Assembly: GCF_006345805.1 (NCBI RefSeq)
Contig: NW_021834002.1
Location: forward strand, 13,862 to 77,861
Source: Octopus sinensis
Lineage: Eukaryota
Direction of reading: 5' to 3'
Length of the DNA stretch: 64,000 nucleotides
Shown: one piece after another, positions 23,521 to 59,200 of the stretch
Layout of the letters: each line of letters opens with the position of its first letter
Position numbering within the stretch: position 1 is the first letter of the stretch
Translations under genes and position numbers: made by a program
Notes under the pieces: generated by a model
What the model was told of the DNA's origin: nothing
What the model saw: only the letters and a program-made list of their open reading frames with translations
The model's database searches: none

Positions 23521-24913
23521 ATATACATATATATCTGTTCAATGAAAGATACATTTTATCGTGAGAAGAAAATGGAATCTGTAGCATCAGACGTTTAAAC
23601 CATTTTATTTCTTCGAAGGAGGGTTTTGATGCAAAACATCTAATCTCACCGGAAACGCATCACAAACGTGTTTATTTATTAGAAATTGTATTATTTAAAA
23701 AAAGAAAAAGAATTAGTCTGGTTAATAGCTAATTGGATTGAGAAATTTCTTTATCAATCAGTCAGACGTATGAATCAGAATAATCCATATACGATTCCAG
23801 TATTTTTAACGATGCCACATATCCCAGAGATCCATCTCGATAACATTGAAAAATGGTGAGTTTTAATTCAATAGAAATAAATGACAGAAAAAAAAATATA
23901 TTCTAGATAAAAAAAAAAAAACTTTAAATTCCGCATATTCAGAAATTGTGAAAACGGTAATAAGCGTAAGGAATCTCTTGCTGATACCAATCTTAGTATT
24001 TTAAAGACCATTTAATCGAATATTTTCATAGTTCTTCGAAAAAATATCTTATTAAATGGCTCCAAGATAGTAGTAATAAATTCCTGTTATGTTATAGCTC
24101 CCAATTTTCCTATAGACGCCTTCCTTTTAAATTTGGGGAATATATATCTATATACATATATATATATATATATATATATATATGCATATATATATACATA
24201 TACATATACATATATATATAACAAATATATATACATATATATATATATATATACATATATACATATATATATATTATACATATATATATATAATATATAA
24301 AATATATAATAATATATATATATATTATATATATATATATATATATATATATATATATTATATATATAATATATAATATATATATATATATATATATACA
24401 TATACATATATATACATACATATACATATACATATACATGTACATATACATATACTAGTAAAACAGCTCTTTGGGGAACCATTTAATAGCAGAACTGAAG
24501 GAAATAGCTGAAAACAAGTATTTCGTTTGAAAATGCATTTGAAGACAGTTTCAAATTTCAATGATAAAGAAGCCATCATTCTTTATCTTGTGTTTTGGAA
24601 ACTACTATAATACCGAAGTTACATGTGGAGATTTTGGAATTAGTATTCACTGGGTGGGGAGGTATTTGCATTGAAGAGACATTCTCATCATTTTAAAGAA
24701 GTAATGTAATTGATAGCGAATTTAAAAGAAATCTTACAAAATGGCGGATGATACAGAATGGAATTTGAATCGTATGCATTCACGGTTGGTAATAACGGAG
24801 ATATAAGTTTTAAATGAATCTAGTTACATCATTAATATAACAAAATATCAATAATTTATTATGTTTCTGTATATAACTTATCGTTATAACTTTACTATGG
24901 TATGGTATTATAT

Positions 24914-25231
24914 AGTGGAGGCGTAATGGCCCAGTAGTTAGAGCAGCGGACTCGCGGTCGTAGAATCGCGGTTTCGATCCCCAGACCGGGCATCGTGTGT
25001 GTTTATTGAGCGAAAACACCTACAGCTCCACGAGGCTCCGGCAGGGGTGGTGGCGACCCCTGTTGTACTCTTTCGCCCCAACTTTCTCTCACTCTTTCTT
25101 CCTTTTTCTTGAGTAACGCTGCGATGGACTGGCGTCCCGTCCAGCTGGGGGTAACAAATACGCCACAGAAATCGGGAAACCGGGCCCATGAACCTGGCTA
25201 GATTTGAAAAGGGGCGCATAAATAAAAAAAA
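24914..25231 (+). mobile_element. SINE family C (V-SINE-like 3' domain) with 12-bp TSD
   Basis: TSD atggtattatat at 24902-24913 and 25232-25243; A-rich tail; gcgatggactggcgtcccgtccag resembles, from memory, the fish V-SINE 3' region. Confidence 0.92.
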
Positions 25232-25289
25232 ATGGTATTATATTTGTGCCGTGGCTGGAATATTTAGGTTCAAATCATCTCTGTGTAAT

Positions 25290-26015
25290 AATAATGGTTT
25301 CAAATTTTAGCACAGGGCAAGCAGTTTTTTTACGGTGGGGTTAGTGGAATTCGATCACACCGACTCCAGTGCTCAACTAGTATTTATTTCATCGACCCTG
25401 AAAAGATAAAAGACAGAGTCGACCTCGACGGAATTTGAGCTCAGAACATAAGGACAGAAGAAATGCCGCTAAGCAATTTTTTTTTTTTTTTTTTTTTTGG
25501 CGTGCTAACGTTTCTGCCAGCCTGTCTCACATCTTCCTATAACAATAGCAAACTTCTGCAAGAGGTTGCAATTTGAACTCAGAATGTAGAGAGTCGTAAT
25601 ATACATCGTAATATATTTCTATCGGCACACCAACAATTCCGTCGTTCTCTCCTTCGCAACATGAAATGAAGGGTTTTGCTCTTGTCGCCCGATCTGGTAA
25701 TCAAATCCATGAAGGATCTAGCTGCCAAATCACAGGGCCACACGGTATTACATTTGAGTATATATTATATATATATATATATATATATATATATATGTTT
25801 CTTTATTACCCACCAGGGGTTAAACATAGAGGGGACAAACAAGGACAGAAAAACGGATTAAGTCGATTACATCGACCCCAGTGTATAACTGGTACTTAAA
25901 TCATCGACCCCCGAAAGGATGAAAGGCAAAGTCGACCTCGGCGGAAGTTGAACTCAGAACGTCAAGACAGACGAAATACGGCTACGCATTTCGCCCGGCG
26001 TGCTAACGTTTCTGC
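25290..26015 (-). mobile_element. Family B SINE copies (25290-25520, a fragment near 25570, and 25797-26014)
   Basis: Family B body motifs on the minus strand. Confidence 0.85.
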
Positions 26016-26121
26016 TATATATATATATATATATATATATATGTGTGTGTGTGTGTGTGTGTGTGTGTGTGTGTGTGTGTGTGTGTGTGGTGTGTGTGTG
26101 TGTGTGTCTGTGTCTGTGTGT

Positions 26122-26226
26122 ATACAGCGTTGGCCAAAAGTCACCCGACTGTAAATCAAAATTCCATAAATACTTAACGTTCAATTTTATTTATTCATTC
26201 CAATTATGAATGTTTAATAATTGAAT
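26122..26226 (+). mobile_element. Possible Tc1-like terminal fragment, interrupted by the SINE dimer
   Basis: TA-CAGCGTTGGCCAAAAGTCACC start; no partner TIR found. Confidence 0.35.
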
Positions 26227-26229
26227 ATT

Positions 26230-56571: not shown

Positions 56572-56861
56572 CAGAGTCTCTATGGAGATCTCTTGCCTGC
56601 TCCTTCAATTATAAGCGAAAGGTGTTTGTGTTTTGCCGAACATTGGTGGCGAGTTGAACAAGTACTAAACAAACGGCCTTCTGCAATGGACGCCAAAGCA
56701 TGGCTGTACTCGAGCAGGTCGTCCAAAGATAATGTATGTAGATCAACTCTCCAGAGACGCTGGATGCTTCCCTGAAGACCTCCATCAAATAATGCAAGAC
56801 CAAAATAGATGACATGCGCGAGTTAAAAGTATCCGAGAGACCCCGAGCATATGATGATGAT
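56572..56861 (+). mobile_element. 3' end of a second RTE-clade LINE with (TGA)n tail
   Basis: LYGDLLPAPSIISERCLCFAEHWWR/GLLQWTPKHGCTRAGRPKIMYVDQLSRDAGCFPEDLHQIMQDQNR*HARVKSIR matches the LYGHLPP..LLWTPxHG..GRP..YIxQL..DTGC RTE C-terminus. Confidence 0.88.
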
Positions 56862-57419
56862 TAAATCCGGAGACTTCTAGGAAATTGAAAATTTTTCAGT
56901 AACAGTGTAATTTTCAAAGATGGTTCTGATGAAAGAAAATTTCCACTGAAGAATTTAAAATAACGCGAGAAATGAAGTTATCAAACATACAAATGTATGT
57001 TTATATTATATTTTTTTAATAAAGTATAAACAGAAAAGAAATAAAATGCAAAGATGTTTATCATTGGGAATCAAATAGTCACATTAAGAAAAATAAATCG
57101 TTGGGAAATAGAAAATTGTTGCGCATAAAGAATTATAGCATCGCATTAAGAAAAAGAAATCTTAATACTATAGAGAATTCAATACGAGAAAGGAATAACA
57201 TTTAAGAAATTATATAGAAGACAATATTACCGCCGGAAATATATATAACACCGAAAATGTTTCATCCATAATGTTGTTTTAAAAAATCGTTCTGCTAAAG
57301 CAAAGATTTCGCCGATGAGTGTAACATTACGTGAGGAAATAAGTGGAAGGATTATCAATTATACAATAAATAAACAGACGTAAAAATGGTCGGTTTTTGT
57401 TTTTGTTTTTATAAAAAAA

Positions 57420-57721
57420 CTAGCAGTATCGCCCGGCGTTGCTCGGGTTTGTAAGGGAAATAACTATATAAGCATTTTTAGAGAGTTACTTCCCTTATAT
57501 AATAGCAAAAAAATGCATTAAAAATGGGAAAAAATGATGGTAATTTTTTTTTTAATCGTAGACTCATCGTAGACGCACGCTAATACCCAGAAGGGCTCGA
57601 TATGAATCACGACTATAAGATAACCGGTTTTGGTTAAACTGCACTGCAAAATGTGGGAGTAGTTAGGAATCTAAATCGTAGGAGACAGACACTCACACAA
57701 CTTCACTTTTATATATAAAGA
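57420..57721 (-). mobile_element. Non-autonomous Helitron, same family as 51319-51713
   Basis: Minus strand 5' TC ... hairpin ... CTAG 3', A^T target; lacks the internal duplication. Confidence 0.88.
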
Positions 57722-57992
57722 TAAATAGAAGCAAATGATATGCAAATCCTTATGCCAAAGTCAGTTTAATACAAGAAAGGGGAGATCGTTAAAGAGATTT
57801 TACGGGGAAGAATATCACCCCTGGAGACTTCTAGGACACCGAAAAAATTTTCAACAACAGAAGATTTAAAAGATGTTGTTGATGAAGTAAAAATATTCAC
57901 TGCAGAGTTGAAAATAACGTGAGAAGAGTTTATCAACTGCACAATGAATTGCCAGGCATAAAAATGTACACATTTTTCATAAAGTATATATA

Positions 57993-58408
57993 GGCGCAGG
58001 AGTGGCTGTGTGGTAAGTAGCTTGCTTACCAGCCACATGGTTCCGGGTTCAGTCCCACTGCGTGCAACCTTGGGCAAGTGTCTTCTACTATAGCCTCGGG
58101 CCGACCAAAGCCTTGTGAGTGGATTAGGTAGACGGAAACTGAAAGAAGCCCGTCGTATATATGTATATATATATAAGTGTGTGTGTGTGTTTGTGTGCCC
58201 GTGTTTGTCCCGCTAGCATTGCTTGACAACCGATGCTGGTGTGTTTATATCCCCGTCACATGGCGGTTCGGCAAAAAGAGACCGATAGAATAAGTACTGG
58301 GCTTACAAAGAATAAGTCCCGGGTCGAGTTGCTCGATTAAAGGTGGTGCTCCAGCATGGCCTCAGTCAAATGACTGAAACAAGTTAAAAGAGTAAAAAGA
58401 GAGTAAAG
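57993..58408 (+). mobile_element. SINE family A, full length
   Basis: A-box TGGCTGTGTGG, B-box GGTTCAGTCC, CORE-like segment, internal microsatellite, tail. Confidence 0.93.
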
Positions 58409-58419
58409 AGAAGCAAATG

Positions 58420-59200
58420 CGATGCGAAGATGTTGAGCAACCTCCGCACGAGGCGGTGATCTGACGGATTCGTTAGCAGCATCCCGGGCGAAACGCTTTT
58501 GCGGCATTTCGACCCTCTTTACGTTCTAAGTTCAAATTCCGCTGAGGTTTATTTTACCTTTCATCCTTACGAGGTCGATGAAATAAGTTTTGATTTATTT
58601 ATGCGCCCTTTTTAAGTCTAGCCAGGCTCATGGGCCCGGTTTCCCGGTTTCTGTGGCATATGTGATCCCCCTCCCCCGGCTGGACGGGACGCCAGTCCAT
58701 CGCGGAGTTACTCAAGAAACAGGAAGAAAGAGTGAGAAAAAGTTGGGGCGAAATAGTATAACGGGGGTCGCTACCACCTCCTGCCGGATCCTCGTGGAGC
58801 TTTAGGTATTTTCGTTCAATAAACACACACAACGCCCGGTCTGGGAATCGAAACCGCAATCCTCCGACCGCAGGTCCGCTGCCCTAACCACTGGGCCATT
58901 GCGCCTCTACTATATAATATCATACCATATTAAAGTTATAAGAGTACAACGGGGATTGCCACCCCCCACCCCCCGCTGGAGCCTCGTGGAGCTTTAGGTG
59001 TTTTCGCTCAATAAACACACACAACGCCCGATCTGGGAATCGAAACCGCAATCCTCCGACCGCGAGTCCGCTGCCCTAACCACTGGTCCATTGCGCCTCC
59101 GCCGATGAAATAAGTACCAGTCGAGTACTGGGGGGGCGGGTCGATGTAAACAACTTACACCCTTGCCCAAAATTGCTGGCCTTGTGCCGAAATATGACTT
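58420..59200 (+). mobile_element. Family B SINE split by a chimeric family C insertion
   Basis: B halves at 58420-58588 and 59103-59200; 13-bp TSD cgatgaaataagt at 58576-58588 and 59103-59115. Confidence 0.88.
58589..59102 (-). mobile_element. Chimeric family C insertion: SINE 5' half, 30-nt captured flank, full SINE
   Basis: Spacer 58912-58941 is 28/30 identical to 24884-24913. Confidence 0.85.

Follow-up and report, generated by a model that had tools for sequence, protein, structure and literature searches.

A short interspersed element of Octopus sinensis that probably carries the 5' flank of a nearby parent copy in a template-switch chimera

Two short interspersed elements (SINEs) lying 34 kilobases (kb) apart on one Octopus sinensis contig (NCBI RefSeq assembly GCF_006345805.1, contig NW_021834002.1, positions 13,862 to 77,861 of the forward strand) appear to be linked as parent and daughter by a piece of the parent's 5' flank that was copied together with it. 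The first SINE, at 24.9 kb (locus 1), belongs to a group of elements that we call family C and is directly preceded by 30 nucleotides (nt) of genomic DNA that recur at 58.6–59.1 kb (locus 2), on the opposite strand, between a full-length family C SINE and the 5' half of another, with the whole array enclosed in a single target site duplication (TSD). We consider it probable (roughly 0.7) that one target-primed reverse transcription event, driven by a long interspersed element (LINE), built this bipartite chimera from an extended RNA of locus 1 and a second SINE RNA; the narrower statement, that locus 2 is a single template-switch retrocopy carrying a locus-1-type flank, we would make with higher confidence. 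A normal SINE transcript carries no flank, so that parent copies are almost never identifiable; 30 nt of the parent's upstream DNA inside a daughter would therefore be a rare direct parent–daughter link. The analysis covers the whole stretch of 64,000 nt (the window, within which positions are numbered from its first base), and all copy counts and statements of uniqueness, including that of the 30-nt stretch (the 30-mer), are within this window.

The features of locus 1 are:

24884–24913, + strand: 30 nt of unique genomic DNA directly 5' of the locus-1 SINE, recurring inside the locus-2 chimera
24902–24913, + strand: 5' copy of the locus-1 TSD, atggtattatat, by direct reading (12/12 against 25232–25243)
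24914–25231, + strand: locus-1 family C SINE, 318 nt, proposed source copy
25232–25243, + strand: 3' copy of the locus-1 TSD, atggtattatat, by direct reading

The locus-1 SINE begins with agtggaggcg and ends with gcgcataaataaaaaaaaa; it consists of a 3-nt leader (agt), a head in which motifs resembling box A and box B can be made out (tggcccagtgg and ggtttcgattcc in the family C head, by direct reading), a common core and a tail in which cataaataaa is followed by an A run. Seven family C-type matches were found in the window, with TSDs of 10–13 base pairs (bp) and A-rich or simple-repeat tails, and among these copies the same head and core are joined to three different tails. The original prediction, made from the sequence alone, had given the locus-1 SINE a 12-bp TSD of its own, and atggtattatat is indeed identical at all 12 positions of 24902–24913 and 25232–25243. 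The upstream flank (24300–24883) has no other match in the window, and the flanks taken together (24300–24913 and 25242–25347) have no further match there beyond the 30-mer copy at locus 2.

The features of locus 2, all read on the minus strand, are:

59103–59115, − strand: 5' copy (in element orientation) of the chimera TSD, acttatttcatcg (13/13 against 58588–58576)
58940–59102, − strand: another SINE's 5' half (head and core as in locus 1), from a gc leader and ggaggcg to gttgtactctt
58912–58941, − strand: captured 30-mer, including a copy of the locus-1 TSD (atgAtattatat), 28/30 identical to 24884–24913
58589–58911, − strand: full-length inner SINE with agt leader, proposed daughter copy, with the locus-1 tail type and the A-rich end aaataaatcaaa
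58576–58588, − strand: 3' copy of the chimera TSD (13/13)
58450–59190 (approximate ends), − strand: host family B SINE split by the chimera, from alignment with six paralogous B copies

The half SINE, the 30-mer and the full SINE are contiguous and in the same orientation, as direct reading and alignment both show. The half SINE extends to 59102, as had been predicted; its 5' edge is a natural SINE 5' end (the 2-nt leader gc followed by ggaggcg, like other copies) and its other end (gttgtactctt, ~58940) corresponds to about position 158–160 of the 318-nt element. SINE-type homology runs through t58940 (ACTCTT) and flank-type homology begins at t58941 (TTATAAC), with the TT at 58941–58940 common to both sequences, a 2-nt microhomology; the junction between half SINE and flank reads GTTGTACTCTTATAACTTTA (chimeric junction gttgtactcttataacttta) and that between flank and inner SINE reads TATGGTATGRTATTATATAGTRGAGGCG. 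At the far end, the inner SINE's A-rich tail, aaataaatcaaa, directly adjoins the TSD. The chimera TSD, acttatttcatcg (cgatgaaataagt on the + strand), matches at all 13 positions, and when the flanks are joined by removing 58589–59102 and one TSD copy, a continuous, colinear family B SINE results. The alignments of six other family B copies in the window pass straight through the joined site (...ctggtacttatttcatcgacc.cg.aaggatgaaagg...) and contain the 13-mer once, which bears out the claim that the whole chimera lies in one 13-bp TSD inside a family B SINE. On direct reading, locus 2 has neither a poly-A nor a second TSD between the parts of the chimera, nor any 3'-half remnant. Given the single TSD, the colinear empty site and the lack of such remnants, the economical reading is that locus 2 represents one RNA-mediated insertion event. 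Nested independent insertions were rejected on the same grounds (no 3'-half remnant of a first element, no poly-A, no second TSD), as was splicing as the source of the junction, where GT/AG dinucleotides are absent.

What ties this insertion to locus 1 is the 30-mer. Alignment of 58941–58912 (−) with 24884–24913 confirmed the predicted identity of 28/30, the locus-1 TSD included, and with the agt leader 31/33 positions are common to both loci. At both loci the 30-mer joins the 5' end of the SINE at an identical base and is followed by the same trinucleotide, agt; the four further copies in the window that have a head lack the 30-mer in their 5' flanks. A search with up to three mismatches, which had been proposed as a check and was run across the 64-kb window, returned these two sites only, against 0 matches in 100 shuffles.

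The direction of copying can be read from how the 30-mer sits at each locus. At locus 1 it is overlapped by the TSD, its last 12 nt recurring after the A tail, so that the 30-mer there is pre-existing target DNA; at locus 2 it is embedded between SINE sequences, with no matching 3' TSD copy of atgatattatat. Together these show that the sequence was copied into locus 2 from locus 1, or from a locus identical to it by descent, and copying in the reverse direction was rejected since the locus-1 TSD lies inside the 30-mer, not outside it. One of the two mismatches falls within the TSD (24905), where both locus-1 TSD copies hold G and locus 2 holds A; the A thus arose on the locus-2 side. The homology between the loci has a sharp start at 24884 and stops within the A run, and no locus-1 3' flank was carried. 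Such an A-tail boundary, combined with a TSD, is what priming on the A-rich tail of an RNA leaves behind, and not what DNA duplication does. Segmental or tandem DNA duplication was rejected because the homology stops at 24884 and at the A tail and does not extend into both flanks, and self-comparison of the window revealed no other low-copy similarity between the two regions.

Divergence is also compatible with one copying event. The locus-1 and inner SINE bodies differ by 33 substitutions over 315 positions (10.5%; 89.5% identity), with 9 further gap columns; 8 of the differences are transitions at CpG, the divergence at non-CpG sites is 7.9%, and both bodies are clearly old, not near-identical, copies by this measure. 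The flank has diverged to the same degree (2/30, 6.7%; Fisher p = 0.75 against the whole body and p = 1.0 against its non-CpG sites only). When the differences are polarized by means of the other five copies and fragments that align in the window, derived changes are balanced between the two sides (13 at locus 1 and 16 at locus 2; binomial p = 0.71), as would be expected had both copies separated at a single time from a sequence close to the consensus. The inner SINE (58589–58911) also proved to be of the same subtype as the locus-1 SINE, as predicted: the two have in common a tail type, containing GGACTGGCGTCCCGTCCAGC, that is held by no other copy in the window.

Taken together, the A-rich 3' end, the TSD and the missing 3' flank suggest an RNA intermediate and a template switch, and the event may have run as follows. 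An RNA from the + strand would have crossed the locus-1 SINE, covering at least 24884–25231 and starting at least 30 nt upstream of the element; such an extended donor would differ from the canonical SINE transcript with its internal promoter. Primed by its A-rich tail at a nick in an older family B SINE (~58.58 kb), this RNA would have served a reverse transcriptase as template for the whole SINE, its agt leader and the 30 nt that precede it. At or near the donor's 5' end, the enzyme would have switched to a second SINE RNA, at about position 158–160 and with TT as a 2-nt overlap, and followed that RNA as far as the natural 5' end, after which second-strand processing would have left the 13-bp TSD around the whole product. 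The reverse transcriptase partner is putative; no LINE with a 3' end that matches was found in the window. If the acceptor RNA was shortened, the acceptor point, ACTCTT(T), may mark its 3' end, in keeping with an end-to-end jump; it could just as well be a site of internal strand transfer helped by the TT overlap. If the link holds, a transcript starting upstream of a SINE can be retrotransposed, and a reverse transcriptase has been caught switching between two SINE RNAs; that the 24.9-kb locus was once transcribed on its + strand, as the original prediction had it, would follow logically from the model.

The extended RNA itself may be a read-through product of a transcription unit further upstream or may have had an aberrant start upstream of the element; its promoter may have been that of RNA polymerase II (Pol II), by read-through, or that of RNA polymerase III (Pol III), by an upstream start. 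A TATA-like tatataa lies at 24870–24876, 8–14 nt from the start of the captured stretch; it was rejected as a promoter for a start at 24884, the spacing being too short. The first T4 run 3' of the locus-1 SINE occurs only at 25305, so that a Pol III transcript would hold an internal A run for priming. In both SINEs, an AATAAA hexamer lies inside cataaataaa just before the A run (25218–25231; 58601–58589 (−)) and could serve as a polyadenylation signal in a Pol II read-through RNA. Each body also holds a T5 run (25103–25107 at locus 1 and 58741–58737 (−) in the inner copy), at different positions and derived in both; as each would now be a Pol III terminator, neither copy is likely to be transcription-competent today. 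The upstream TSD edges of both insertions lie in a GGT/A context (24899–24902; 59118–59115 (−)), which with n = 2 may mean nothing or may hint at a nicking preference of the partner endonuclease.

Several observations weigh against this reading, of which the first concerns the SINE bodies. Comparison of the seven family C copies and fragments of the window, which stood in for the tree of family copies proposed with the original prediction, gave head distances that are star-like: 19/153 between locus 1 and the inner copy, 15/154 between the inner copy and the adjoining half copy, 17/153 between locus 1 and the half copy, and 16/153 between locus 1 and a further copy (h9156). Only two states are exclusive to the locus-1/inner pair (C at both columns 182 and 203 of the family C alignment, A1), and three states (A1 columns 81, 87 and 186) link the inner copy with the adjoining half copy and not with locus 1, the difference at columns 87 and 186 falling at a CpG site. 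With two copies in the window, the shared tail type is too sparse to show subfamily structure. The phylogeny is thus star-like, the bodies are not demonstrably sisters, and positive evidence that they are is nearly absent; such a pattern would be expected had locus 1 been transcribed soon after its own insertion, but this expectation is not positive evidence either. The predicted switch between a read-through RNA and a second SINE RNA therefore draws its support from the architecture, the TSDs and the divergences, and the assignment of locus 1 itself, and not an unseen duplicate, as donor is an inference that rests on the flank and not on the bodies.

The second point is the distance. To our knowledge, there is no reason for trans-acting retrotransposition to land 34 kb from its template; by our own estimate, for an assumed genome of 1–3 gigabases (Gb), a random daughter falls within 34 kb of its parent with a chance of ~2–7 × 10−5. 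Viewing a single window exposes only local pairs, and this selection explains part of the proximity; beyond that, either the proximity is a lucky draw or the model is incomplete in its assumption of a unique donor or of random insertion. The third is that the acceptor was entered inside the second SINE (~160 of 318) and not at a full-length 3' end, as in classical end-to-end jumps and in the chimeras known from LINE reverse transcriptases.

The best-surviving alternative, which we nevertheless consider unlikely, keeps the mechanism and changes the donor: the arrangement of 30-mer, SINE and TSD would occur at further places in the genome, either because the SINE lies inside a repeat or segment that multiplied later or because locus 1 acted as a prolific master, with extended progeny that became sources in turn; the RNA copied into locus 2 would have come from one of these other copies, and the 34-kb pairing would be coincidental. 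The uniqueness of the 30-mer holds for 64 kb, the low prior for a close landing is more easily met with many candidate copies, and the bodies share no exclusive similarity beyond two sites, all of which this alternative would accommodate. Against it, the locus-1 flanks (24300–24913 and 25242–25347) are unmatched in a window where high-copy repeats recur often, and the proximity becomes likely only with hundreds to thousands of copies.

Less probable still, in our judgement, is that the template switch took place earlier and elsewhere, with locus 2 an ordinary daughter of a transcribed dimeric SINE family and locus 1 still the ultimate origin of the linker. Dimeric SINEs are common, and another tandem SINE inside one TSD lies at 26227–26766. 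The chimera would itself be a plausible member of such a family, beginning with a complete head with box A- and box B-like motifs and ending in a normal tail; it has a single stretch of at least four T (58741), which depends on a T at A1 column 211, and as C stands there in locus 1 and in the four other copies aligned at that column, the stretch arose later. No second copy of the chimeric junction was found in the window, however, and nothing speaks positively for amplification.

A variant of the preferred model, which we hold to be about as doubtful and if anything slightly more so, would explain the proximity by local capture: a nascent or chromatin-retained + strand read-through RNA across 24.9 kb would have been taken, in cis-proximity, by a LINE reverse transcriptase at a nick some tens of kb off along the same chromatin fibre. 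If true, this would amount to "local hopping" of non-canonical SINE transcripts, and it predicts a genome-wide excess of short parent–daughter distances for SINE copies tagged by a flank.

We regard as very unlikely a local event at the DNA level, in which a break in the family B SINE was repaired by synthesis templated first by locus 1 and then by a SINE, either by synthesis-dependent repair or by template switching during replication. The usual template of such insertions is DNA close by, and their junctions tend to carry microhomology. An event of this kind would account for both the proximity and the 2-nt overlap; but the copied stretch stops inside the SINE A tail and not at an arbitrary point, a clean 13-bp TSD surrounds the insert, and the 5' part stops at a natural SINE 5' end, signatures of retrotransposition that disfavour DNA-templated repair. 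Coincidence, or independent insertions into similar target sequence, has only the AT-richness of the 30-mer in its favour and is refuted by the lack of shuffle matches at up to three mismatches, the identical SINE junction with its agt leader and the missing 3' TSD copy of atgatattatat at locus 2.

Insertion by way of flank capture and a template switch, as we propose for locus 2, has close parallels. 5' transduction has been described for L1 and SVA, and as in that process a non-element stretch at locus 2 matches the DNA upstream of another copy and meets the element at the same junction. The likeness to L1 and SVA transduction (surveyed for SVA in PMC12593883) lies in the upstream source sequence inside the daughter's TSD, a tag for the source locus; locus 2 differs in being a small SINE with a head of the internal-promoter type, for which upstream starts are not expected, and in carrying only 30 nt before a second template follows. 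Template-switch chimeras inside a single TSD are likewise documented for LINE reverse transcriptases (PMC2104539). With these chimeras (U6/L1 and others in humans; WEIRD/Mg-SINE/MGL of Magnaporthe, PMC2104539; U6, PMC4476161), locus 2 has in common directly fused copies of transcripts in the same orientation, an A-rich 3' tail, a natural 5' end of the 5' part and a single TSD, and it differs from them in that both partners are SINE RNAs of one superfamily and that the donor carries a locus-identifying flank. 5' flank capture and template-switch chimeras are both already known; locus 2 combines the two and introduces no new mechanism.

Template switching is, moreover, the usual explanation for how SINEs exchange modules (PMC4824008, PMC4758252, PMC5729268). 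The MetaSINEs (PMC4824008), the "jigsaw" SINEs of molluscs (PMC4758252) and PittSINE (PMC5729268) resemble the family C copies of the window with their common head and core and three tails; those papers infer switches from family consensus sequences, whereas locus 2 is a single insertion, and nothing indicates that a family arose from it. The chimera would thus be a single-locus snapshot of the head/core/tail type of template switch, and a reverse transcriptase moving between SINE RNAs is the process invoked for common heads and cores with different tails, here and in molluscs generally. Its value would lie in making a SINE parent traceable, which is rare, in serving well for teaching and in prompting the question whether flank-tagged copies cluster near their sources. 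The octopus tRNA-derived SINEs OR1, OR2 and OK (Ohshima and Okada 1994, as cited in PMC4824008 and PMC4758252) may also be comparable, as a lead only.

The two other family C tails occur in copies at 9157–9538 (+) and 54491–~54205 (−), which follow the family C head and core to about position 196 and then depart into different sequences; the former has a 10-bp TSD, atatgtgtat (9147–9156 and 9539–9548). We read these two copies as modular exchange of head, core and tail inside one window. Another SINE of tandem or chimeric build, whose family is related and older, occupies 26216–26777 within one 11-bp TSD, aataattgaat (26216–26226 and 26767–26777). It comprises a full unit (~26227–26508), a short linker and a 5'-truncated unit (from ~position 82; 26531–26766) that ends in (CAA)n; identity between the two units is 88.8%, and the tandem could reflect another template switch or a tandem duplication at the DNA level.

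As to the class of the family C head, ARAGORN and Rfam (gathering threshold and E ≤ 1) gave no tRNA match for it. Aligned with the tRNA-related head of an approximate MIR consensus, it showed a weak local match confined to box A and box B (z ~3.5), and a CORE-SINE label is not claimed on that basis.

Searches of external collections, none of which contained this genome or its relatives, gave no homologue for a 69-amino-acid open reading frame (ORF) spanning head, 30-mer and flank, no exact-protein match for two ORFs crossing SINE and flank, and no match in metagenome scans for the junction and the tail motif or in two scans of viral contigs. A scan of genome contigs with the tail motif returned one match, in a bacterial metagenome-assembled genome, which we judge to be a chance, unrelated 20-mer; a literature search for the sequence strings found nothing. 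Near locus 1, a 183-amino-acid ORF at 19321–19872 (−) encodes degenerate C2H2 zinc fingers (Pfam zf-C2H2, E = 2.4e-8), the only domain match among ten ORFs scanned, and has no homologue in the protein collection, which was likewise without this genome or its relatives.

The window as a whole is rich in repeats. Family-B-like SINEs cluster at 10.8–11.9, 25.3–26.0, 42.5–43.1 and 52.2–52.8 kb, some in alternating orientation; 27% of the window matches another part of it, and TA and CA microsatellites are very dense. As a lead only, we take these repeats to be cephalopod-like, with their box A/B-type head, shared central domain and dense SINEs.

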